Source of the DNA: Amoeboaphelidium protococcarum X5
Taxonomy: Eukaryota > Fungi > Aphelidiomycota
DNA length: 64,000 bases
Direction: 5' to 3'
Assembly: GCA_023515725.1 (NCBI GenBank)
Contig: JALDTO010000214.1
Coordinates: 165,743-229,742, forward strand
In this document: piece by piece, positions 19,626 through 54,504 of the stretch
Layout of the letters: every line of letters begins with the position of its first letter
Position numbering within the stretch: the first letter of the stretch is position 1
Notes under the pieces: generated by a model
The model's input: only the letters and a program-made list of their open reading frames with translations
What the model was told of the DNA's origin: nothing
Database searches by the model: none
Position numbers and translations under genes: made by a program

Positions 19626-20065
19626 TAAAAAAGATTTCTTTAAAAATTAAAATACACACTATACTCATAGTAATGGAAGAGGGGAGAATACACTTGTTCT
19701 TACTGTGTCTTCCCGGCGCCAATCGAAAACGCGAGATATTTCACACAACTGAAACCATGTCGGTAGAATCGAAGCGAAAAAGTCATCAGATTTGTGTTGC
19801 AGACTACTGTCGGCCACATAGGATGTGCACTGGAATTGTACGTCGAAAATCCCATATTTGAGACTGTGCTTTTTTTAAACTTTGGCTTGGCTTCAGGATA
19901 AATTAGCTTTGTGTTCAATTAAAATAATTCGCATCAGCTAATCAGCGATTGTGTTTAGATCATTGTGCGACCAGTCGTTGATTATGAATCGCTTCTGTAA
20001 CGGGATACTGTGTTACTTCTTCTTTGTGTAAATCACAATCTCTTATCAAAAGTTTTGCCTATACC

Positions 20066-20911
20066 ATGGTATCCTATGTTGATATCATCTTTCTGGTGTC
20101 ATCTTTCCTTGTCATTCATGTCGCGTCAGCTGTTTCAAGTGAATTTCAAGAAATGCTCAATCTCGTGAATGCTGAACGCGCATCTAAAGGGGCCCCGGCC
20201 GTTTGTTTGAACGCTAAACTGAACCAAGTGGCGTAGCGCTATGCATAGGTACTCGATGCTGCTGGAGCTATGGAGCACGAAGGTGTTGACGGGACCGATT
20301 TACCTACGCGTTTGTAGGCTGCAGGCTTTCCATACTCCTCTGCAGGAGAAGTCTTGGCGAAATGCTCCAAGCCTCAAGATGCTGTACGAGGTTGGATTAA
20401 TTCTCCTTCACATCACAGCGCAATGATCGATCCAAAGTATCAATTAGCTGGTATTGGACAAAGCGGCTTAAAGTGGGTCATGTACTATGCAGCGTCTGGT
20501 GAGGAGAAATGTTCTTCTGAATTGCCTGCAACATCTCCATCCCCAAGCGCAAAAGCTTATCACTCCACTGATTCCCCCGCCTCTGATGTCGATGCCCATA
20601 CATAAACTTAATCGTTGCCATTGTAAAGCATTTTATCTGCGCCGATTGCTGTTGGTTAGCCCTCGTCGTCTAATCCTCCGGCTACACCAACTTCATCGCC
20701 ATCTGGTTCTCCTTCTCCCGCCGATAGTGCCGCTTCGTAAGAAGAAATATTTCTCGATCTCTCTAGCTAAAGCAGTTTGGATACATTGAAATCCATTATC
20801 ATTGGTATATTTCCTGGTCTGGCAGAATCGTCCGAGTAGCTGGATCAGCTAAATCAAGCGTTGGAGCGCCACGGAATTGGCAAAGGCGGTGTCACCTACA
20901 TGGCTGGCTGA
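20066..20911 (+). CDS. Secreted CAP/SCP (PR-1-like) protein with Ser/Pro-rich tail
   Basis: Signal peptide; MLNLVNAERASKG, LNAKLNQVAQ, MEHEG, AVRGWINSPSHHSAM. Confidence 0.88.
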
Positions 20912-21098: not shown

Positions 21099-24000
21099 TC
21101 AAGACTGTGACAGCTTCTAAACTTCACCAGCAATAGCTATAGCAGACGGTCTCATAGAAGAATCTTGAGCCCAAGCAAGTTGAACAACCTGAAATAGCAT
21201 ATGTGCACGGCTTTCCAGAAATTGAGCTTCAGGCCTTGCACCTTGCAGCACCAGCTCAGCAACTTACGCTGCATTGAAGCCTTCCCATGCCTTTGTGCGC
21301 GTCAATATCTCAAACATCACCACAGCACCAGCATAAACATCGCTTGAAGGAAGAAGATGCTCAGGCACTTATAATTATTACAAAACTTCTGGAGCAGCAT
21401 ACTTAATAGAGTGACCTTTCAACAAATTCCATTATAAGCCTTTGACAAAGTTTGCCTGAGACTGGATTGTGCAGATACCAAAGTCTGTCAAAACCGCACG
21501 CAAAACTCTATTACTGCCTTGCTATACCAAATAATTACCGGATTTGATGTCATTGTGGACGACAGAATTGAAATGCAGGATAGAAAGCGAAGTCATTACG
21601 TCCAAACATAAAATCTGCTGTTACTCCATTGAATAGTCGACCTGTTGAAAAGGCAAAGCTTGGCCCAGAATCAGCTGTTCCAAAGACCCCAGTTCATAAT
21701 TGATCATAAGCAATACATTGTGCAGAGTATCGAAACCAACCAGCTTTGCAATCTAGTCATCGTCTTTGAATCTCCACATCAGAGCAATCTCCTGATGAAC
21801 GCTATCCTTCTGCACTTTGCCAATGAAGCATTTAGCTGCAACCAATCTTGTACTACTTGTAGCAAACGGATGCAAAGTCGGAAAAGACAAAATCTCTGCA
21901 ACCTAAATCTCAGCTTATCCGCCCTTGTTGATAAAGAAAATTGGGTACCATTCTAAAATTTATAACACGCTTCAACTCCAAGTATGCTGGCACAGCAACT
22001 TCCATCGAAGAATTCATAAACGTTGTACCACCCATCGCTGTACCTCCTATTTAAATCGCCGAACCAATTGCCGCATTTAATGTTTGATCAGTCATACCTC
22101 CAGTATTCCTTAATAACAGCATCTTGGAAGACCTCATGCGAGCCTTGATGTATCTGCGCCTGATGCAATACATAGACAGCAGAACCAACACTAAAATCAA
22201 AAAGCAGACAATCGCATTAACAATGATGTACACGGTCATCGTAGAGGACTAGGTACCAGGCTACATTTAACCTGCTTAGCCATCACTTATGGTCATACTG
22301 CCTCCAGATCTAGAGCTATGTTCAGCAGACTTCAACGTAAACATCACTTGAGTAGTATAATTTACCAAACTAGCGGTACTTACAAAACCAAATTCTGATG
22401 ACGTTGGCAAAGTATTAACTTTACTCTCATCTTGAGACGAAATAGAGGTTATGTGGCTTATTATACTACTTTCAAATAATCCTGTACTCATGACTGTTGT
22501 AGTACTAGTGGGTGTTGTGGTAGTCGTCGTCGTAGTGGTGGTTGTAGTCGTGGGAGTTGTAGTTGTAGTAGCAGTAGTTGTTGTGGCAGTAGTAACAGGG
22601 TCAAAGTCCAAATAATTTGCAACACGTAACCACTACCAGACGTTGGTAAATTTACAGCGTTAATGTTGGAACTATCAAACAGCTAGGATGCACTACCGAA
22701 AGTACCAGCCAGAATCATACTATTGTCTTTTCCTCTCAGAATATCACGGACAGTGATTCCACTCGTACCACGGAAACTATACAGAAATTTACCAGATGGA
22801 CTGAACTTCAGCACAGTTGATGGAGATGATGAAATGCTTTAACTATTCCCCAATCCATCTACTACAGAAACAGAAGACGATGAAAGCTATGCAGCCACAA
22901 AGACATTTGAGACAGCGTCCACAGCACAATCAACAGCCTAATCATTACTAGCACCATCCATTGTTGCAACATAAAGTAGAGCACTACCAGGGCTGTAAGT
23001 CGCAACAAAGCCACTAAGAAGAACTTGACTGGGATTTACACTGCGACCTGATTATCCATTGACGCCATAGAATCCAAGAGGATATGCTGTTATATAATAC
23101 GAACCAACTAGGACGATATTACCATTCGGTGACACGCTTAGAGCGGAAGGTACTGGTTGAGAATCATCGATACGCACCATCCATTAAAAAACACCACCAC
23201 CACTAAACTTCGCCAAAAATAGAGCCGATTTTAAAATCATATTGTTTTATAGAGTTTTTGGCAGAATCACGAACGCCAAGTTAGCCAATGGGAGTATTAT
23301 AGCCATTTTACATAGTGTCTCCAAAAGTAAATGATCCAGCCACATACACATCACCAGTTGATTACGACACGGCAATAGCAGAGTTACATGTTACCACAGC
23401 AGCATACCCAATATTGACTCTCCACAGCTCAGCACCACTTGGATTTATCTTGCGCACGTTGCAGACGGTAGTTGTTGGACTGAAGCTAAATCCTCCATAT
23501 AAATACGATAGAGCCTGGTTAGCTTGAGACATTTGAAAAATATTGTTATCAGAATCAACTGCAAGTCCGTATACCGCGGGAAATTCATTAGGTAGGAACC
23601 CAGCCCATTAAAACCCGCCTTACGATGACAATTTAGCGTGCCATTATGCTGTAGTGCTTGCATAGAGAATGTAATTCACTGCTGTATTTATATTGATATA
23701 AATATCATCAATGCCCGAGACCAATCCGCCAGAGATAATAAGATCACCTTGATTGTCTGTTGTCTGTAACCAGCGAAAGACCATTAGCTTCGGCTTGGGT
23801 GTATATGGATGAAGTCCACAGAATATTGCCAGTCTAGCCATTTATTTTCACAAAGGAAAGCGCATTCTTATTACAGTAATTATTATACGGCTCTTAGACG
23901 GCTCCACCAAAAGTTGTAGTGAACTAAGATTAGATGTTAAAGTAAATGAACGATACAATAAAGTCGCCATTGGGGTCGGTAACAGTGCCTAAGTATCTTA

Positions 24001-24103
24001 CTAATCTATTCTATAGCGTGCCAACCCAGGAGACATTCGCATAATCGCTGGCCACTGTTGTCCCAAAGCAGTAGATGATCAGATTCAATGGCAGGAGCAT
24101 CAT
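21099..24103 (-). pseudogene. Disrupted copy of the beta-propeller/poly-Thr receptor kinase family
   Basis: Colinear with 45331-48537 and 48883-52206 but has four frameshifts: +7 duplication (TGTCTGT twice, 23754-23767), about -11 near 23240-23260, -1 near 22621 and +1 near 21938. In-frame TGAs follow the first and last. Confidence 0.85.
22493..22596 (-). repeat. Poly-Thr (ACN)n stalk, short
   Basis: GTA/GTT/GTC triplet run on the + strand. Confidence 0.9.
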
Positions 24104-36871: not shown

Positions 36872-39334
36872 TCATTGATCAATCTCTTCTACGGAACTCA
36901 GACCGGGCGCGGAAGGTACCTGGATGGTTTTCCTGTGCATGGCCTTCTTCTCTTTTTCAGTCAGCACGTCCACAGTTTTCATGCGAAAGCGTTAATTTCC
37001 TTTGCTTGTGGGCACTGTCGAGGCGGGCCGTTGTTTCTGATCAGCCACTGGAAGATCTCTACTGCTAGTGTTCTTGGTGCTCTGTCGGAGGTGTGCCGAC
37101 AATTTCGTCAATTGAGTCCAGTCATATTGAGGTAGTTCAGAGTATTACGCCTTCAACTTTTACTTGATTTTCTCAAAGGACATTCTTTCCATCGGATTGC
37201 CACTCCAACATATCATCATGATCTCGTTCAAACTCTTCAATAAATCACTTGATCGAATCTAAGCAAGAGTATCCTAATCAAACTCTGGCCGTTGTCCCTC
37301 TCTGACTGCGCATTCAATCTCATCTGAATGCATTCTGTCCCAGCAAGATTTCTTGGCCATCATCTCCCAGATCACAATAGCGAAAGCGTAAACATCGGCC
37401 ATTTTCTCTTCCTCTGGATTGGTCATGGACATTGCTGACTAATCTTTGCTGGCAGAGGTCACGGTATTTCCCTTTAGGTAGAGTCGTTTGAAAACTTCAG
37501 GTGCTGCATATCTAATTGAGATACCTTGAACATCCGCAAATTTGGCTCCTTTGATATCAGACTCACCAATGATCTTTGCAAGTCCAAAATCACAAATCAC
37601 CGCACGCCAGTAGTTAGGATCGCCAATCTCTCGAGGTGCGTCAATTAGAATATTATTTGGCTTTATATCACGATGAACAATTCCGATTGAGTGCATTTCA
37701 CACAACGCGTCAGACACATGGTACGTCATTCGGAACACTACTTCAGGAGTGAGTGCGTAGTGAAGAGTACTAGTCTTTATGACATCGCTTAATGAACGTG
37801 CATAGTACTTCATGACAATAGATAACGGTTCATCGGTGAATCCAATCAACTTGATTATATTCTCATGGAAATTAAGACTCCACATAATGGCCACTTCAGT
37901 TTTAAAATTCAGCACTAATTCTTCTTGTGTCCACGTTCCAGGATTCTTGACCAATTTCACAACTACGTGCTTAGTTCGATACTTGGTACGGAGACGATCA
38001 TCTAGCAGTTCAGCTTCATAGATCACGCCGCCACCACCTTCGGCTATAACTTTATACGGTCTCACGTCAGCATTATAGTCAATTTTCAAGAATCCAGGAA
38101 GAGCAATGGCTGTCTTTGTATTGATCATTGTACAGTCGGCAGGATTCATCATCATTCTCCCAGTGGCACCAAATTGCTATTGTTATTGAAATCTATCAAC
38201 CTCCTCGCCATAAATTTCATCAAAATCTTGAGATGCTTCAACGCTGTGCAGCTAATCAGCAGACTGTTCAATGCTTTCAGCACTTGCTCCAACCGTCTTA
38301 CTACTTGCATGGAGATTCTTCTTATGCAACTTCTTAGTAGAGCCATGTTCAAGATCACCTTGATTATTGGTTAAAAACATTGACAGTCTCTTCTATCTCC
38401 TATAACAGCCAATAATAAGTATGATTGACAACAGGGCAATTACACCAGAGACACAAATTAAAATAATGACAATCATACTATTTAAGCCATTGCTATTACC
38501 GTTAGAATTTAACTGATCAGAAGATCCAGGTTAGGATGAAGTTGGAGGCTGGGTACTAGAAGGGCCGTCCGAATTAACAGTCGACGATGTAGCAGCAGTA
38601 GTTGGCATCATAGTACCAGATGGTATAGTGGCTGAGATGGGGATACATTTTGGTGGATTATTCCAAATGCCTCCGTACACCTTGGCGTAACTAATGCCAT
38701 TTCCACCTAGTTATCCGACTGAATCCGCAGGTAAAGGAGAACAAGCGAACGTATTCTATACTGGCGCCTGCTGCACTTCACTAATATTCAGACCGATGAC
38801 AGTCTGTGAGGAGGCTGCAGTATTACCACCGCCTTGACACCGCATAATAAGGCTGTTAGTTGAAATGAAGGATCCTGCAGCGATCTACTGATAGCCAGTG
38901 GTAGACGGGATATCATTGCATGACTAGAAAGCATAAGCGTTCGCTGCGGCAATTTCAGAATCTAAAAATGGCTTAGCAATACCAATGCCTTGATATTTGC
39001 AGACCACTTAGTTCACAACTCCAGTTTGCGGATGCACAAGATCAAAGGTGAGGTAAGAGAGTGCATCTCCGGAATTTCCAACGGGTAGATTGGTGACATT
39101 AAGGAAGCGAGGAACTTCAATCACAAGCGATTAACTGTCCAATGATACAGTTCCATTCGGAGAACCAGCATAAGATAAAAATGCGTCAACGTATCTCATA
39201 GTACCAAAGTTAGTTACCACATTCGCCGTCGCTTACAGTTGATAGAACCGGCATGGTCTCACCAGCGTGCAATCTTGAGCCCAAGCCCTTAAGATGTAAC
39301 ACACAGCAACAATAATAAAACTGAATCGCAACAT
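36872..39334 (-). CDS. Receptor-like (TKL) protein kinase with unrecognised Cys-containing ectodomain
   Basis: Signal MLRFSFIIVAVCYILRAWA, TM IVIILICVSGVIALLSIILIIGCY, kinase EGGGG, HRDIKPNN, DFG, YAAPE. 820 aa. Confidence 0.88.
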
Positions 39335-44386: not shown

Positions 44387-44588
44387 TAAATCTTATTTTT
44401 TAATTAGAAATTTTGCATCTTCGAGATTATGAAGGAACCGATTTACGGGTTTGCCAAGACAAAGGGGCTATACTTGGCAGGAGTCATCATGATGAATGAG
44501 TATCGACATACTTACTTCTTACTTGTTAAGCTTTCAAAAAATCTATATAATTACGTAAATTTATAATATACTATCCTACTTTTTCATA

Positions 44589-44960
44589 ATGAACGCGTCA
44601 ATTCTATTTGCTCTGGTGCTATCTGTGATCTGTGGTGTGTAATCTCAGACTTTTGAATAGGCTCAAGATACTGTGCTGCAAGTTGCTCAGGATCCTTAGG
44701 TGCAGTAGACTGCAAATGATATCTACAATCAGCTGATCAATTCTACTGATATTCAGACTTCTGGTAGCGTGGATAATGGTCAAGCTACTATCACTAGTCC
44801 TTTGGTCAACGGAACCATCACTAACAATAATGGTAATATCAGCTTTGTTGGTAAGGTCGCTAATGTCAGTGATATTGTTCCATCTGGCGCAAGTACTGCT
44901 CAAAAGTCTTCTATTGCTTTCGGTTCTGCTCTGGCTCTGGTTGCATATAGTCTGCTATGA
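44589..44960 (+). CDS. Small secreted, probably GPI-anchored protein
   Basis: Signal MNASILFALVLSVICGVQS and C-terminal SGASTAQKSSIAFGSALALVAYSLL. Confidence 0.8.
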
Positions 44961-45330: not shown

Positions 45331-48300
45331 ATGCTCGTATCTGTCATTTTTGGCATTTGCTGCTTTGTGACAACCGTAGTGTGTGATTATGCGAATGTGT
45401 CATGGGTTGGCACGCTTTCAAACAATTGGCTTTAATACATTGACACTGTGACTGACCCCAATGGTGACTTCATTGTATCATACTGGTACACGGGAGTCCA
45501 GTCTCAGTTTGTCACTTCATTTGGTGGTGCTGTATAAAACACGTAGAATTTCAATTATGGGCTGTATGCCTCTTCTTTCGTAAAAGTTAGTGGCTCGACT
45601 GGCTAGATTTTGTGGACAATATCCATGTCTGGCCCATAAGGCGCTTATAGTTACTAGCTGACTACTGACAGCTAAGGCAATCTATTTGCTTCTGGTTAAC
45701 TTTACGCTGGCGTTGCAACATTGAACTTTTATTTCAACGGGGGTTTAGTCTATACTTTGGCAACAAGTACAACATCATCATGGCACGCTAAGTGGTCGTC
45801 AGCTGGTCAATTGTAGTGGGCCGGTTTTCAATCTAATGAGTTTCCTACAATTACAGGACTTGCATCGGATTCTGGTAACAATATTTTTCAAATCTCATAA
45901 GCTAGCCAGACTCTTTCCTACACTTACGGGGGATTTAGCTTTAGTCCCACAACTTCTGTCTGCAATTTGCGAAAGGTAAATCCCAGTGCTGTGTAGCTTT
46001 GGAAAGTCAACATTGGATATGCTGCCGTAGTATCATGTAGCTCAGCAATTGCCGTGTCCTAAACAACTGGTGATGTGTATGTAGCTGGATCGTTCACTTT
46101 TGGGGACACTGTGTAGAATGGTTATAAGACTCCAATTGGCTTACTCGGCATTCGTGATTCTACCAACCAGCTTTACATCACCTAACAAAGCAATATGACT
46201 CTGAAATCAGCTTTATTTTTGGCCAAGTTTAATAACAATGGCGTCTTCTAGTGGTTGGTACGCATTGACGATTCGCAACCTTCACCATCCGCTCTAAGTG
46301 TGTCGCCCAATGGAAATGTCATCCTAGTTGGTTCGTATCAGAACACAGCATCACCTCTCAATTTCTACGACACTAACGGTTAATTGGTCCGCAGTGTAAA
46401 TCCTGCTCGAGTAATGCTTAGTGGCTTTGTGGCGACCTTCAGCCCATCTGGTGCATTAATCTACGTTGCGACGATGGACGGATCAGGTGATGATTATGCC
46501 TACCACAGTGCAGTGGGAGCTGATTCTAATGCCTTTGTGGGATCATACTCTTCATCAACGTCTATTGCCGTGATTGACGGATTAGGAAATAGCTATAATA
46601 TTGCAGCGTCTGCCTCAAGTATATTAAAGTTTAGTCCATCTGGCAAATTTCTGTATAGCTTTCGCGGAAGTAGTGGTATTTCAGGCAGTAATATACTAAA
46701 AGGTTTTAACAATAGTCTGATTTTAGTTGGAAGTTTTGGCGGTGCATAAAAATTCTTTGACAGTTCCTCCGATAAAGGTGTGGATGTTCCGACAACTGTT
46801 GGAGGTATGGTATTTGCAAAGTACTTGGATTTTGTGTAAACGCCGACTACCACTACTACAACAACAACAACAACAACAACCACAACTACTACCACTACCA
46901 CTACAACCACGACTACTACCACTACTAGCACGACTACTACCACTACAACCACTACAACTACCACTACTACCACACCAACTACTACGACTACAACTACAAC
47001 AACCACCACGACTACCACCACAACAACGACGACTACTACCACACCTACTACTACGAGTACAACGACAACTACTACTACACCGACAACAACTACGACTACC
47101 ACAACGTCGACTACTACAACAACACACTATAGTAGTACGACAGTCATGAGTACTGGGTCATCTGAAAGCAGTATAATAAGCCATATAAGCTCTACTGCGC
47201 CCCAAGGTGAAAGTAAAATCCATGCTTTGCCAACGTCATCGGAAGTTGGTTTTGTAAGTACCGTCAGTTTGGTGAATTATACGAATCATGTGATGTTTAC
47301 GTTGAAGCCTGCTGAACATAGTTCCAGATCTGGAGACAGTATGACACTAAGTGACGGCGAAGCAGGATAAGTGTAGCCTGGTACGTAGTCCTCTATGATG
47401 ACTCTGTACATCATTGTTATTGCGATTGTATGCGTTTTAATTCTAGTATTGTTTTTGCTGTCAATATATTGCATTAGGCGCAGATACATCAAAACACGAA
47501 TGCTTTCCTCTAGAATGAAGAATAAGACATCAAGTAGTGCTGCTGGTACAACCAATCAATCATTTAGTACAGTTATAGGCCCTGCGACCTAAGTAGTAGG
47601 AACTTTGATGAGTGGGACAACGTATATGAACACTTCGATGGAAGTTGCGGTGCCTGCATATTTGGAGTTGAAGCGCGACTTAAATTTTAGAATGCTGCCC
47701 AATTCCTTCATAAATAAAGGTGGTTAAGCTGAGATATAGGTTGCGGAGATTTTGTCGTATCCACCTGGACATCCTTTCGCTTCAGTTGGTACTAGATTCG
47801 TAGCTGCTAAATGCTTTATTGGCGATGTTAAGAGAGATAGCGTTAATCAAGAGATTGCTTTAATGTGGAGATTCAAAGACTATGACCAAATTGCAAAACT
47901 AGTGGGATTTGATGGTTAACATAATGTTTTGCTAATTATAAATTACGAACTTGGTTCGTTGGAGTAGCTTATTCTGAATCAAGCTTAAGCCGTGGATTAC
48001 TCTATTGAATTGCAGACGATGCTATGCTTTGACGTTATTACTGCATTGGTGATCCTTCATCAGAGTGCTGTGGTCCACAATGACATAAAGTCTGGCAACT
48101 ACTTACTGTATCAAGACGCTAACGGCGCCTTGAGAGCTTCTCTGACGGACTTTGGTATCTGTACGCTTCAGTCCCGGGCCAATGTTGTGTAAGGCATAGA
48201 ATGGAATCGATTGCAAGGCCACACTGTCTCTTATGCTGCACCTGAGGTTCTTGCGAGATCATTGGTTCCAGAGTAGCTTCTTCCTGCTAGAGATGTTTAT

Positions 48301-48537
48301 GCTGGCGCTGTGGTGATGTTTGAGATTTTGGCGCGTAGGAAAGCTTGGGGAGGCTATAAAGCAGCTCAAGTCACTGAAATGGTCCTCCAGGGTTTAAGAC
48401 CTGAGGCTTAATTTTTGAATGATCGTGCTCTTATGCTTTTCCAAGTTGTTCAAATTGCATGGGCTCAAGATCCTTTCATGAGGCCTGTTGCTGCAGCTAT
48501 TGCCAACGAGATCCAGAATCTCGCATAAAATTTATGA
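45331..48537 (+). CDS. Receptor kinase: signal peptide, beta-propeller, poly-Thr stalk, TM, non-RD TKL kinase
   Basis: Single intronless frame (1068 aa). Blades such as TDSQGNLFASG, GDVYVAGSF, FLAKFNNNGVFQW, GNVILVGSY; TM plus RRR; VAAK, HNDIKSGN, DFG, YAAPE. Confidence 0.9.
46839..47140 (+). repeat. Poly-Thr (ACN)n stalk
   Basis: ACT/ACA/ACC/ACG run of about 100 codons. Confidence 0.92.
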
Positions 48538-48882
48538 TTTTTATATGATGATTTAATACAATGTTTTTAAGCTTTCATGTGGTTTCAACATTTACTGTTT
48601 GCAAAGTGTACATAGTCCGTGGTCCAGTAAACAAACAATAAGCTCAAATTTCTTGCGAGAAGTGCTGCACTGCTTTAGAGTTCCATTGAATCTATTTTTA
48701 GCCTGATGACGATTTGTACAATGATTTATTAGCCATGGTGCCATCTTTTACAAAGCCCCTGCATTCTTATCAAGTAATCTTGGTTGAATGTATACTAAGC
48801 TGATAATTATCTAAACTCTATTTTCTGGGTATTAATATTATATAAGCTAGATATTAAATCAGTTCAAATTATCAACAATCTA

Positions 48883-50581
48883 ATGCACGCTTTGGTTATT
48901 CTTCTCATCTACTGCTTTGTATCGACTGCCTGGTGTGACTAAGCCAATGGATCCTGGGTTGGCACATTGTATAACAACCTGTTCTAATACAGTGCCACCG
49001 TTACAGATCCTTTTGGAGATTTTATACTACTGCATCGATATGCTGCCGGTCAATCCTAATTTGCCACCACTCTTGGTGGTGCGGTCTAGAATACACAAAA
49101 TTTTTTCTCTGCATCTCTACCGTTTTCATTTTTGAAGATTAATGGGTAAACTGGCTAGATTTAATGGACTGCATCCGTTGACTGCAGTACTGGTGTTTTC
49201 AGCTGGCAATTGACCACAGACAATTAAGGTAATCTCATTGCAACAGGTTTCGTTTTTGGTGTTGCTGCTCTGAGATTTTATTTCAATGGAGTATTGGTCT
49301 AAACATTGGCATAAAGTACAACAACCCCATGGCACGCCAAGTGGTCGCCAGCGGGTCAATTCCTTTGGGCTCAATTTCTACCTGCTGATCTATCTAGGAT
49401 TACCGGACTTGCAGTTGATTCTGCTAACAATATCTTTCAAATGTCGTAGGTTAACCAGGCTCTTTCATACACATATGGGGGATTTAGCTTCAGTCCTTCA
49501 ACTACCGTCTGCAACTTGCGCAAGGTAAATCCTAGTGGTGCTTAGCTGTGGAAAGTCAACATTGGGCATGCTGCAACTACAACCTGTAACTCTGCTATTG
49601 CCGTGTCGTAGTCAACAGGCGATGTGTATGTTGCTGGATCGTTCACTTTTGGGGACACTGTGTAGAATGGCTACAATACTCCAATTGGCTTATTAGGCAT
49701 TCGAGATTCCACTAATTAGCTCTATAATACTCAACAAAGCAACATGATTTTAAAGTCGGCTCTATTCTTGGCTAAATTCAATAGCGCTGGTGTCTTCTAG
49801 TGGCTGGTGCGTATTGACGATTCGTAACCAGTACCATCCGCTCTAAGTGTGTCGCCAGATGGAAATGTTGTCCTTGTTGGCTCGTATCAGAATACAGCTT
49901 ATGCTCTTGGGTTTTACGACATTAATGGTTAACTAGTCCGCAGTGTGAATCCTGCTCGAGTAATGATGAGTGGCTTCGTAGCGACCTACAGTCCAACTGG
50001 TTCTCTAGTATATGTAGCGACAATGGACGGAGCTAGTGATGATTAGGCCGTTGATTGTGTTGTGGACGCTGTCTCCAACGTATTTGTGGCAGCATAGCTT
50101 GCATCGCCTGCTGTCGCTGTAGTTGATGGATTAGGGAATAGCTAAAGTATTCCATCATCTCCGTCAACCGTGCTGAAGTTTAGTCCATCTGGTAAGTTTT
50201 TGTATAGTTTTCGAGGTACTGGCATCACCGTTCGTGATATTCTGAGAGGAATCGACAATAGCTTGATTCTAGCTGGTTAATTTACCAGCGGATCCAAATT
50301 ATATGATAGTTCCAACATTAATGGTTTGGATATGCCGTGGTCTGGTAGTGGTTACGTGTTTGCAAATTATTTGGATTATGACTCTACTCCGACAACCACA
50401 AGTACTACTACTACGACTACTACTACAACAACAACTACGACTACAACAACAACTACGACTACGACAACCACGTCGACAACTACCACTAGTACCACCACAA
50501 CAACAACTACTACTCCGACCACAACTACGTCTACTACAACCACGACGACTACTTCTATTAGTGCTACAACAACATCAACCC

Positions 50582-50624
<43 letters not shown>

Positions 50625-52206
50625 GACGACGACGACTCCTACTACAACGACAACCACGACTACCACTTTGATCTCAACTACGACTACGACGACGATTACC
50701 ACACTTTCTACGACTACACCGACTACTGTGACTGCTCCGACAACAGCTAGTACTACGCCGACAACGACTACTGCCACAATGTCATTTGCTAGTGCAATAT
50801 TATCCGAAGCTGCCTTAATAAGTCTCGTTAACTCCACCACATCCTAAATTGCTGTTGATATTAGCTCAATGACAACTTCTCTGTTGTCTGATCCACAGAC
50901 TACTACTGCAATCTTGATTAGTCACACTACAAAACTAATTTTCGAGTTGCTCTCGAACGAGTAAAGCTCTAGTATTACAAATAGTATGTCACTCAATGAC
51001 GACGTAGCAGGACAAGTATAGCCTGGAACTTAGTCTTAAATGATGACACTGTACATTATTGTCATTGTGATTGTGTGCGTTTTAATCATTGCAGTCGTTC
51101 TACTGTCTATGTACTGCATAAGGCGCAGGTACATCAAGGCTCGCATGAGATCTTCCAAGACACTGTTATCAAGGAATATTGGAGGTATGACTGATCAAAC
51201 ATTAAATGCGGCAATTGGTTCGGCGATTTAAACAGGAGGCACAGCGATGGGTGGTACAACGTTTATGAATTCTTCGATGGAAGTTGCTGTGCCAGCATAC
51301 TTGGAGTTGAAGCGTGATATCAATTTTAGAATGGTACCCAATTCCTTTATCAACAAGGGCGGATAAGCTGAGATTTAGGTTGCAGAGATTTTGTCATATC
51401 CTGCGGGACACCCTTTTGCTACAAGTGGAACTAAATTCGTAGCAGCTAAATGCTTCATTGGCAAAGTGCAGAAGGATAGCGTTCATCAGGAGATTGCTCT
51501 GATGTGGAGATTCAAAGACTATGACTAAATTGCAAAGCTGATTGGTTTCGATACTTTGCTCAATGTATTGCTTATGATCAATTATGAACTGGGCTCTTTG
51601 GAGTAGCTGATTCTGGGCCAAACTCAGTATGCTTAATCGGTCAACTATTCAATGGAGTAACAGCAAATTTTATGCTTAGACGTTTTCGCAGCGTTATGGA
51701 TCTTGCATTAGAATGCTGTGGTCCACAATGACATCAAGTCTGGCAACTATTTGGTGTACCAAGACGCTAGCGGTCTATAACGCGCTGTACTGACAGACTT
51801 TGGTATTTGTACTCTACTTTCGCGGGCGAACGTAGTGTAGGGTATGTAATGGAATTAATTAAAAGGCCACACTGTCACGTATGCTGCACCAGAGGTTTTG
51901 TCTAAACTACAAGTTCCAGAGCAGCTTCTCCCTGCAAGAGATGTTTACGCTGGTGCTGTGGTGATGTATGAGATTTTGACGCGTAGAAAAGCATGGGACG
52001 GCTATAAAGCAGCTTAAATCACTGAAATGGTACTTTAAGGTTTAAGACCCGATGCATCATTTCAGAATTACCGTGTGCAGCTGCTCTTTCAGATTATTTA
52101 ACTTGCTTGGGCTCAAGATCCTCAAATGAGGCCTACTGCGGCAGCTATAGCTGGTGAGCTATAAAACATTCCACCAATTGAATACACGACGACACTAATG
52201 TAATGA
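48883..52206 (+). CDS. Tandem paralog receptor kinase: beta-propeller, poly-Thr stalk, TM, non-RD TKL kinase
   Basis: Single intronless frame (1107 aa) colinear with 45331-48537. HNDIKSGN, DFG, YAAPE. Confidence 0.9.
50383..50778 (+). repeat. Poly-Thr (ACN)n stalk, long
   Basis: About 130 codons, including a pure (ACT)n tract near 50587-50622. Confidence 0.92.
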
Positions 52207-52490: not shown

Positions 52491-54191
52491 TCATCGAGGT
52501 GTACCAAATAGACGGCCCAGCAGACTACCACTTGAACTCTACTGGGAGTCCCCATTGCGCACACTACCTAGTATAAGACTCTCAGCAGATCGATCCAGCT
52601 GTCGAGAGTTCCTCAAAGACGCAGCAGAGGATTGAAATATCGGCCGACTTGACCTTCTAGTGTATTCCACAGCATTTGTAGAACTCAGCGCAGGGGAGTC
52701 CATCATTTCATCATCATATCCTGTAGAATTTTAATTACCATTTAACGACTATTATTCTTACTGATTATCATCATAGAGATTGCAATCTGATTCAAACATG
52801 AAATCATGCAGATTCTATTAATCATCACCAACATCACCTTGCCGGATATACCTTTAAGTGGAGTATGGCAGTTCAGCATTTGGTACTAACGGAGAAGTCT
52901 CAGAATGCAGAGTAGATCCACTTGGAAGCCCTGATGATGATTATGGAAACTCAGCAATAGTAATTCTAAGCTCATCCGAGTTTTCATATTCATCGTTAAT
53001 TGAGGAGGAAGACGATGACGACACAGAGCCATCCACTAGGACATCAGTCTTACATATGGGACATACTCTCTTCTTTGTGAGAAGCCAGGGATCAATGCAC
53101 TGCATGTGGAAAGAATGGCTACAATTGACCAGATACCTAATCTTATCACCAACCACGAAATCATCAAGACAGATGGCACACGTTTTACCATACTTTACAT
53201 ACTATTAATGATTCCGACGACGCTTGCCTTCACTTTTATACACCGAATCTTATGACGCGGCACCAGAGTCTGGTTAATCATCTACTTAGTAACTGCTGGT
53301 AGACGCTATACTGAGACTTCTCACAGATCCTTCATAAATTTCTACAGGAAGCCTCTGCAGATCTTCGTCTGACAATGTTCCAATATAGTCTCCATCTCCT
53401 GGTGCTTAACCATCCGCTGTTATAAATCTCCGTCGCCTAAATCTCCAGAGGGAATACAAAAATATGAATATGACAATAGGGGCAATAATGGTCACAATGA
53501 TAATATCCAGCATAGGCCATTAGAAATCCTATTGCTTTGAAATCTCCACCCACAGATACTCATCGCCAAGCATGTAATCAGACGGAACACCATCACGAGC
53601 ATCAAAAGTCTGCGAGTTCTTCAATCCGAGATACCTCAAATCTCTATAAGCCCACTGCATCACAAAGACGGATGGTACGTCGATATCGCTCGTGTCACCA
53701 GAGCCAAACATCACAATCAATCCATTTCGCTGCTCATTATCACCGACAACCACGGCCGATGCACCAGACTACTGCATAGCTCTGACTTTATCCACAAATG
53801 AGCACTATCCTCTCTCGACCAGAGCTATCCAAGGAGGAATCGTCTCATTACCAGCCGGCTATAAAATGAATTCTGGTGGATATACAGGCACACAACCTTT
53901 GGGTGAATTTTCAATATAGCTAAATTGTAATTAAGGTATTTATTCAACAACATCCTGCTATTCCTAAATAATTGTTGCGTTATCTCTTATAATCTCAGTA
54001 GGCCTGGGAGAGAGTTGATCTACAGCCACCAGGATTCCTCTGACAGGAGAGTCGATATCGATATTGGGACCAAATGCGGCTATTCTATCATCATAAGTGT
54101 CATTAGTCGACAATACTGTGACTTTTGCAATTAAATTTTATACCAAAATCGCTAAAAGAACTGCAATTAATCGCAATATAATATGAGCCAT
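52491..54191 (-). CDS. PA-TM-RING E3 ubiquitin ligase (RNF13/RNF167-like)
   Basis: Signal peptide, AAFGP, IALVERGQCSFVDKVRAMQ, TM, RING-H2 CAICLDDF...CSHSFHMQCIDPWLLTKKRVCPIC. Confidence 0.92.
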
Positions 54192-54504
54192 TTTAAACTC
54201 TATTACACTTGAGATAATTGAATTAATGATGATGATGATCACTAACGGAGAAAAGAATGAATGAATGTGATAACACACGAGAGCGACAATATTCACAGTG
54301 ACGTGATGAAAGTGGCCGAAATCATAGTGTTACACGCCGATTGAAAATTAACCCACGCTTTTTCAGTAATAATTAGGACCAGATATTAAAGAAGATTTGA
54401 TATAGCAAATAGTAAATGCTATTGATTCATATCATTTATATTTCACCCAAAACACCTCACTGCTAAACTATTTGCATACCTGCAACAACTAAACATGAGA
54501 CAAT

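Follow-up and report, generated by a model that had tools for sequence, protein, structure and literature searches.

Two intact tandem genes, which we call A and B, lie in a 64,000-nucleotide stretch of the genome of the aphelid Amoeboaphelidium protococcarum X5 (assembly GCA_023515725.1, contig JALDTO010000214.1, positions 165,743 to 229,742, forward strand; hereafter the window), and their sequences indicate that they belong to a family of single-pass receptor Ser/Thr kinases, with a beta-propeller head, that has expanded in the aphelid lineage. The diversity of this family arises through birth-and-death, recombination between paralogs, shuffling of ectodomains and kinases, kinase loss, pseudogene formation and strain-specific insertions, and not through detectable positive selection. 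We propose, with a probability of about 0.55, that these proteins sense stable external cues, for example features of the host wall, at the cell surface, each with a specificity that is old and conserved, and that they signal by ligand-driven clustering. Aphelids, which form the sister group of fungi, cause crashes of algal cultures. The features of the window are collected in Table 1.

Long open reading frames (ORFs) in the window require TAA and TAG to be read as Gln, with TGA as stop (table 6), and under this code A and B are uninterrupted. An earlier note on this DNA had described two such genes, each with a signal peptide, a propeller of about 480 amino acids (aa), a Thr stalk, a transmembrane (TM) helix and a kinase, and this layout is present in both, with signal peptides and TM helices called from a hydropathy scan and from reading the sequences. 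With a predicted signal peptide, ectodomain, single TM helix and cytoplasmic kinase in one ORF, A and B have the layout of receptor-like kinases. Three blade motifs had been quoted as shared; all three occur in B, but A has only GDVYVAGSF. The propeller of A carries a hairpin insert in each blade, and Cys211 and Cys236 are conserved. The catalytic loop HNDIKSGN was found as described (48076–48099 in A, 51724–51747 in B), so that both kinases are non-RD (non-arginine–aspartate). The beta3 Lys, alphaC Glu, HxD, K-x-x-N, DFG and APE motifs are all present, while the first Gly of the Gly-rich loop is replaced by Asn, and the kinase, with its motifs intact, is under purifying selection (dN/dS, omega, 0.10). 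As to the TKL group, to which the kinases had been assigned, PF07714 and PF00069 score alike on this type of kinase, and the nearest solved kinases, RIPK1, FAK, RIPK2 and PAK4, are all weak matches (E 3.5e-13 for RIPK1/2); the best 60 matches among solved kinase structures include no IRAK and no plant receptor kinase.

Homology searches of the A and B ectodomains were run with stop-free protein pieces, and structure models were built from relatives at NCBI. A profile of these pieces matched 13,040 proteins, the top named ones being SBBP repeat proteins. AlphaFold2 modelled P0011, an incomplete family member about 70% identical to B, as six four-stranded blades with a hairpin insert in each (predicted local distance difference test, pLDDT, 83.6; predicted template modelling score 0.85), and a complete ectodomain of the sister clade (P0165) was also modelled as a propeller (pLDDT 80). 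CylK is the best PDB match of both models (E 4e-13 for P0011; Z 23.9 for the sister-clade ectodomain); matches in a structure atlas are SBBP clusters (template modelling score 0.69–0.78), and in a viral fold library the score to a Tupanvirus protein is 0.72. These models of relatives predict that the A and B ectodomains are four-stranded-blade beta-propellers, as had been claimed; their seventh blade comes from reading the A and B sequences, the P0011 model showing six. The A/B subfamily has no match above the Pfam cut-off for PF06739, which a relative, P0162, passes at 23.1 bits. We thus call the head SBBP-derived, since its named top homologs are all SBBP proteins, and do not call it a Pfam member. 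In most members the propeller gives no Pfam match, so that automatic annotation would miss it.

The central blades were said to be conserved and the first and last ones to differ strongly between copies. This is what we observe: A and B share 85–95% identity in blades 4–5 versus 52–69% in the outer blades, although dS is also lower in the conserved centre (0.95 versus 1.44 in the N-terminal part), so that part of this conservation may reflect homogenisation. Variation is also spread unevenly over the propeller and is highest in the DA loops of the top face, where omega averages 0.32 versus 0.15–0.21 in strands (DA loops versus bottom turns, p=0.03). In its strong form the reading of the earlier note is an arms-race receptor family with outer blades under diversifying selection, and the concentration of variation in the outer blades and DA loops fits this idea, but the tests of selection do not. 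In site models of 482 codons in 8 copies (our own implementation, with table 6), M2a is no better than M1a (log likelihood -8006.17 for both), M7, M8a and M8 tie, and no propeller site was found with omega above 1; four propeller segments, each analysed with its own tree, gave no positive selection. These null results are not due to lack of power, since the same test found simulated sites in 10/10 runs, both for 5% of sites at omega 3 and for 8% at omega 2. The many aromatic substitutions that had been pointed out are not above chance, since Phe, Trp or Tyr is involved in 20–21% of differences versus about 24% expected from the aromatic content of 12.8%. The earlier note had itself given a lack of positive selection as a refuting outcome, and this outcome was obtained, although the variation is not scattered at random over the blades. 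For these 8 copies the arms-race explanation is largely refuted, and we consider it very improbable.

Pairwise dN/dS gave no sign of positive selection either. Regional values are 0.17 in the N-terminal part of the propeller, 0.14 in its core and 0.24 in its C-terminal part. The genome (23.6 Mb, 346 contigs) contains contigs paired as homeologs, and a genome-wide duplication is reported in PMC10608142. In 11 homeolog pairs the pooled omega is 0.15 for the ectodomain versus 0.11 for the kinase (p=0.07); ectodomain values range from 0.06 to 0.24, and the propellers are 91–99% identical. Propellers of paralogs differ by about 30–40%.

The family is a multigene one, with at least 54 propeller loci genome-wide, 45 of which have a kinase on the same strand within 2.6 kb; both counts include about 20 more distant propeller kinases counted by coordinates alone. 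The A/B subfamily comprises six intact kinases (A, B, T2, T3, T4 and D6), four broken copies (the two C copies, D5 and a 5'-truncated copy on contig C154) and two kinase-less copies, T1 (L014:3024–5456 (+)), which has a TM helix and a short tail, and F (L021:5131–7092 (-)), which has a hydrophobic tail like that of glycosylphosphatidylinositol (GPI)-anchored proteins. In sequence, T1 and F resemble receptor-like proteins or adhesins. The homeologous array, on contig C233, has four copies versus two in the window; T1 and T2 are separated by about 3.4 kb of unannotated sequence (L014:5500–8800), which the window array lacks and which is possibly a decayed mobile element. In a second strain (assembly GCA_023515745.1) a Ty3/gypsy element of 5,005 bp, which has a chromodomain and is flanked by identical long terminal repeats of 110 bp, is inserted in D5 (L027:11342–16346), and D6 is interrupted by a 1,257-bp insertion without terminal inverted repeats (L026:8918–10174).

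Copies also exchange parts. In 16/60 triplets of paralogs MaxChi detected mosaic structure, and the breakpoints frequently fall between blades 1 and 2. T3 has the signal peptide of T4 (dS 0.08) and the kinase of T2 (dS 0.28), but a propeller distinct from both. Kinase and ectodomain trees disagree, which indicates that heads and kinases are modular: the kinases of the E pair and of C239/P0162 fall in the A/B kinase clade (100/100) but carry different heads, and the C142d/C98d pair has an A/B-like head (99) on a kinase of another clade. The ectodomain of the E pair (L022:2331–5189 (-) and L023:4523–7357 (+)), of about 355 aa, has no SBBP match.

The least diverged aphelid blades, those of P0162, are 68-aa repeats, which share 41–46% identity with metagenomic proteins versus 27–39% with proteins that carry bacterial secretion or surface domains. 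Among the contigs of the top matches, one adjoins a capsid gene of nucleocytoplasmic large DNA viruses, a second adjoins a Pol-delta-like PolB, a third carries RPB10, TBP and rhodopsin, and a fourth carries Rpb1; by gene content these contigs look viral. IMG/VR holds at least 201 related stretches (identity up to 46–47%), and Tupanvirus, Mimivirus, Pithovirus and klosneuvirus proteins, many with collagen repeats, rank first in the viral fold library. In a mixture-model tree P0162 is nested among the virus-like rows (Shimodaira–Hasegawa-like approximate likelihood ratio test 88/91), but this tree is biased because those rows were picked by similarity; a larger tree with all rows places P0162 without resolution, a grouping with bacteria is not rejected by the approximately unbiased test (p=0.30), and a single-protein scan of GTDB gave no match. 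We therefore put forward only tentatively, as a possible but doubtful history, that the aphelid took its SBBP propeller from a surface or fibre protein of a giant virus, joined it by way of a mucin stalk to a non-RD kinase, and multiplied the fusion to about 45 modular receptors for recognition of hosts or viruses.

The non-RD loop had been read as a pointer to pattern recognition, but it carries no separate weight for this: all 35 clade kinases that were read are non-RD (HND, HCD, HDD or HSD), including those with other ectodomains, so that the loop is one inherited state and not independent evidence. The same observation bears on the possibility that the family consists of innate-immune or non-self receptors of the aphelid, sensing other aphelid strains, bacteria or viruses, giant viruses possibly among them. 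Non-RD kinases are linked to immune signalling (PMC8463890), the arrangement in tandem clusters, the birth-and-death of copies, the companions without a kinase and the knock-outs specific to one strain would suit such a system, and a receptor that recognises a conserved pattern can lack signs of positive selection. The blades are giant-virus-like, and a lake survey gives co-occurrence links between Aphelidea and Nucleocytoviricota (PMC13691094). Against this stand the clade-wide non-RD state, the weak similarity to RIPK1, which does not indicate orthology, and the lack of positive selection, and we regard an immune role as unlikely. RD (HRD) loops were seen in one pair only, an outgroup of distant receptor kinases whose ectodomain differs from the others; the window holds one member of it (36875–39334 (-), 820 aa, short non-propeller ectodomain; homeolog L025:4464–6926 (-)), and this RD kinase is a candidate partner for the non-RD receptors.

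A stalk of 170–240 aa is retained in nearly all members while the heads change. This observation would fit a role in adhesion, mechanosensing or wall integrity with sensing done by the mucin-like stalk, as in fungal Wsc1/Msb2-type proteins, and with the propeller as a generic anchor with drifting loops; omega is below 1 throughout, and the copies without a kinase, GPI-like and TM, are of a kind that would suit adhesins. This explanation, however, does not account for at least 45 distinct heads, each conserved between the two subgenomes, and we find it quite unlikely.

We favour sensing by the propeller heads of stable external cues. From blade topology and general propeller geometry, the stalk should leave the bottom face, since strand C of blade 7 is the last one in the propeller chain; being Thr-rich and probably O-glycosylated, it would hold the variable top-face loops off the membrane. 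Each paralog may bind a different, evolutionarily stable cue, the likeliest being a glycan or protein on the surface of the algal host or on another contacted surface. Binding would cluster the receptors, perhaps via the conserved side of blades 4–5, and switch on the kinase, possibly with a partner kinase by analogy with non-RD plant receptors. Blade 4 has a 40-aa insert (46093–46215; aa 255–295 of A) that ranks with the best-conserved parts of the propeller and is also present in the outgroup pair C142d/C98d; this insert is a possible dimer or co-receptor surface. Likely outputs are decisions on attachment, encystment or penetration, and the repertoire would consist of old specificities, each conserved, and not of the products of a fast arms race. 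Several points weigh against this proposal. The propeller fold is predicted from models of relatives and not of A and B themselves; loops vary more than strands in any propeller, and the difference in variability between the whole top face and the bottom face is at p=0.065; four of about 13 subfamily copies are broken here and two are interrupted in the second strain, so that single copies are dispensable; a search for RNA runs found none listed. We know of no SBBP propeller with a citable ligand, and the best solved relative, CylK, is an enzyme.

With the plant non-RD receptor kinases EFR, XA21 and FLS2 the aphelid proteins share the signal peptide, ectodomain, single TM helix and non-RD Ser/Thr kinase, and, as with plant non-RD receptors and receptor-like proteins, there are tandem clusters and kinase-less companions. 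They differ in having an SBBP propeller on a Thr stalk in place of leucine-rich repeats (LRRs), and in the lack of positive selection in the aphelid family. Blade motif and fold are those of the SBBP (PF06739) propellers of bacteria, archaea and giant viruses and of CylK, but the aphelid propeller is fused to a eukaryotic kinase, and the A and B blades have diverged below the Pfam cut-off. CRINKLY4/ACR4 also places a beta-propeller ectodomain (WD40) on a receptor kinase (bioRxiv 10.1101/2020.08.10.245050); it is plant-specific, and has another propeller family together with a cysteine-rich domain and no mucin stalk. No protein joining SBBP blades to a kinase in another organism appeared in our homolog searches, nor did we find a paper on one, within the limits of those searches.

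A dispersed third copy, C, described earlier as sharing the architecture of A and B, does exist, but it is broken by four frameshifts. NCBI annotates it as KAI3633258.1, with the breaks bridged; it was rejected as an intact gene, the GT–AG candidate at the first break being only 14 nt long. The first frameshift is a 7-bp duplication common to the homeolog on contig C179, and it lies in an 800-bp stretch of 90–100% identity to this homeolog. The ectodomain region as a whole is only about 84% identical, a difference that suggests conversion between subgenomes. A secreted protein with a CAP/SCP-like domain is encoded next to copy C (19988–20908 (+)). Directly upstream of A lies a gene for a small secreted protein with a hydrophobic, GPI-like C-terminus (44496–44960 (+)), and B is adjoined by a gene for a PA-domain, TM, RING-type protein (52494–54362 (-)). 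Elsewhere in the genome, two homeologous non-RD (HSD) kinases (L049:2983–5007 (+) and L050:531–2585 (-)) have an ectodomain that is almost all Ser/Thr stalk behind a short Cys/Pro-rich tip, with an ectodomain omega between them of 0.41, the highest seen. Distant kinases, several with propeller heads, form tandem clusters on contigs C181, C137, C155, C36 and C146, and match only the first 245/304 query residues.

Table 1. Coordinates of genes A and B, their predicted domains and copy C in the window
Feature	Position	Strand	Basis or remark
Gene A, receptor-like kinase, 1068 aa, intact, 31 TAR=Gln codons, TGA end	45331..48537	+	closest to T2 on homeologous contig C233
A: predicted signal peptide, about aa 1–18	45331..45384	+	hydrophobic N-terminus, hydropathy scan
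A: predicted SBBP-type beta-propeller, aa 19–503 (485 aa), seven blades from repeats	45385..46839	+	SBBP homologs, models of relatives
A: Thr/Ser-rich stalk, 188 aa, 66% Ser+Thr	46840..47403	+	composition
A: predicted TM helix, then basic stop-transfer cluster	47404..47475	+	hydropathy
A: non-RD Ser/Thr kinase domain; VAAK lysine, alphaC Glu, HND, DFG, APE	47707..48510	+	motifs
Gene B, receptor-like kinase, 1107 aa, intact, 44 TAR=Gln codons, TGA end	48883..52206	+	homeolog of T4 on C233
B: predicted SBBP-type beta-propeller, aa 19–505, 68% identity to A	48937..50397	+	sequence comparison
B: Thr/Ser-rich stalk, 217 aa, about 65% Ser+Thr	50398..51048	+	composition
B: predicted TM helix	51049..51120	+	hydropathy
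B: non-RD kinase domain	51346..52179	+	motifs
Copy C, pseudogene, four frameshifts near 23760, 23255, 22621 and 21940	21099..24103	-	ORF reading

A conspicuous expansion of receptor-like kinases in aphelids is reportedly described in the abstract of the 2022 study by Mikhailov and colleagues, which deals with the same species, and the general kinase expansion of aphelids is already published. Receptor-like kinase sets differ between aphelids and fungi (Mikhailov et al., 2022, Curr Biol 32:4607, doi 10.1016/j.cub.2022.08.071, as cited in PMC10608142), and chytrids are reported to have LRR receptor-like kinases (PMC13618815). What the present analysis contributes is a set of about 45 candidate sensors whose fold is defined and whose variable face is mapped; together with natural knock-outs that differ between two sequenced strains, they make host-range hypotheses testable. 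In its layout of propeller, stalk and non-RD kinase, and in having kinase-less companions, the family would parallel plant receptor systems by convergence. If the head proves to come from a giant virus, this would add a route by which eukaryotic receptors acquire new sensing domains, and the sister group of fungi would then have built a receptor-kinase repertoire on a viral attachment module.

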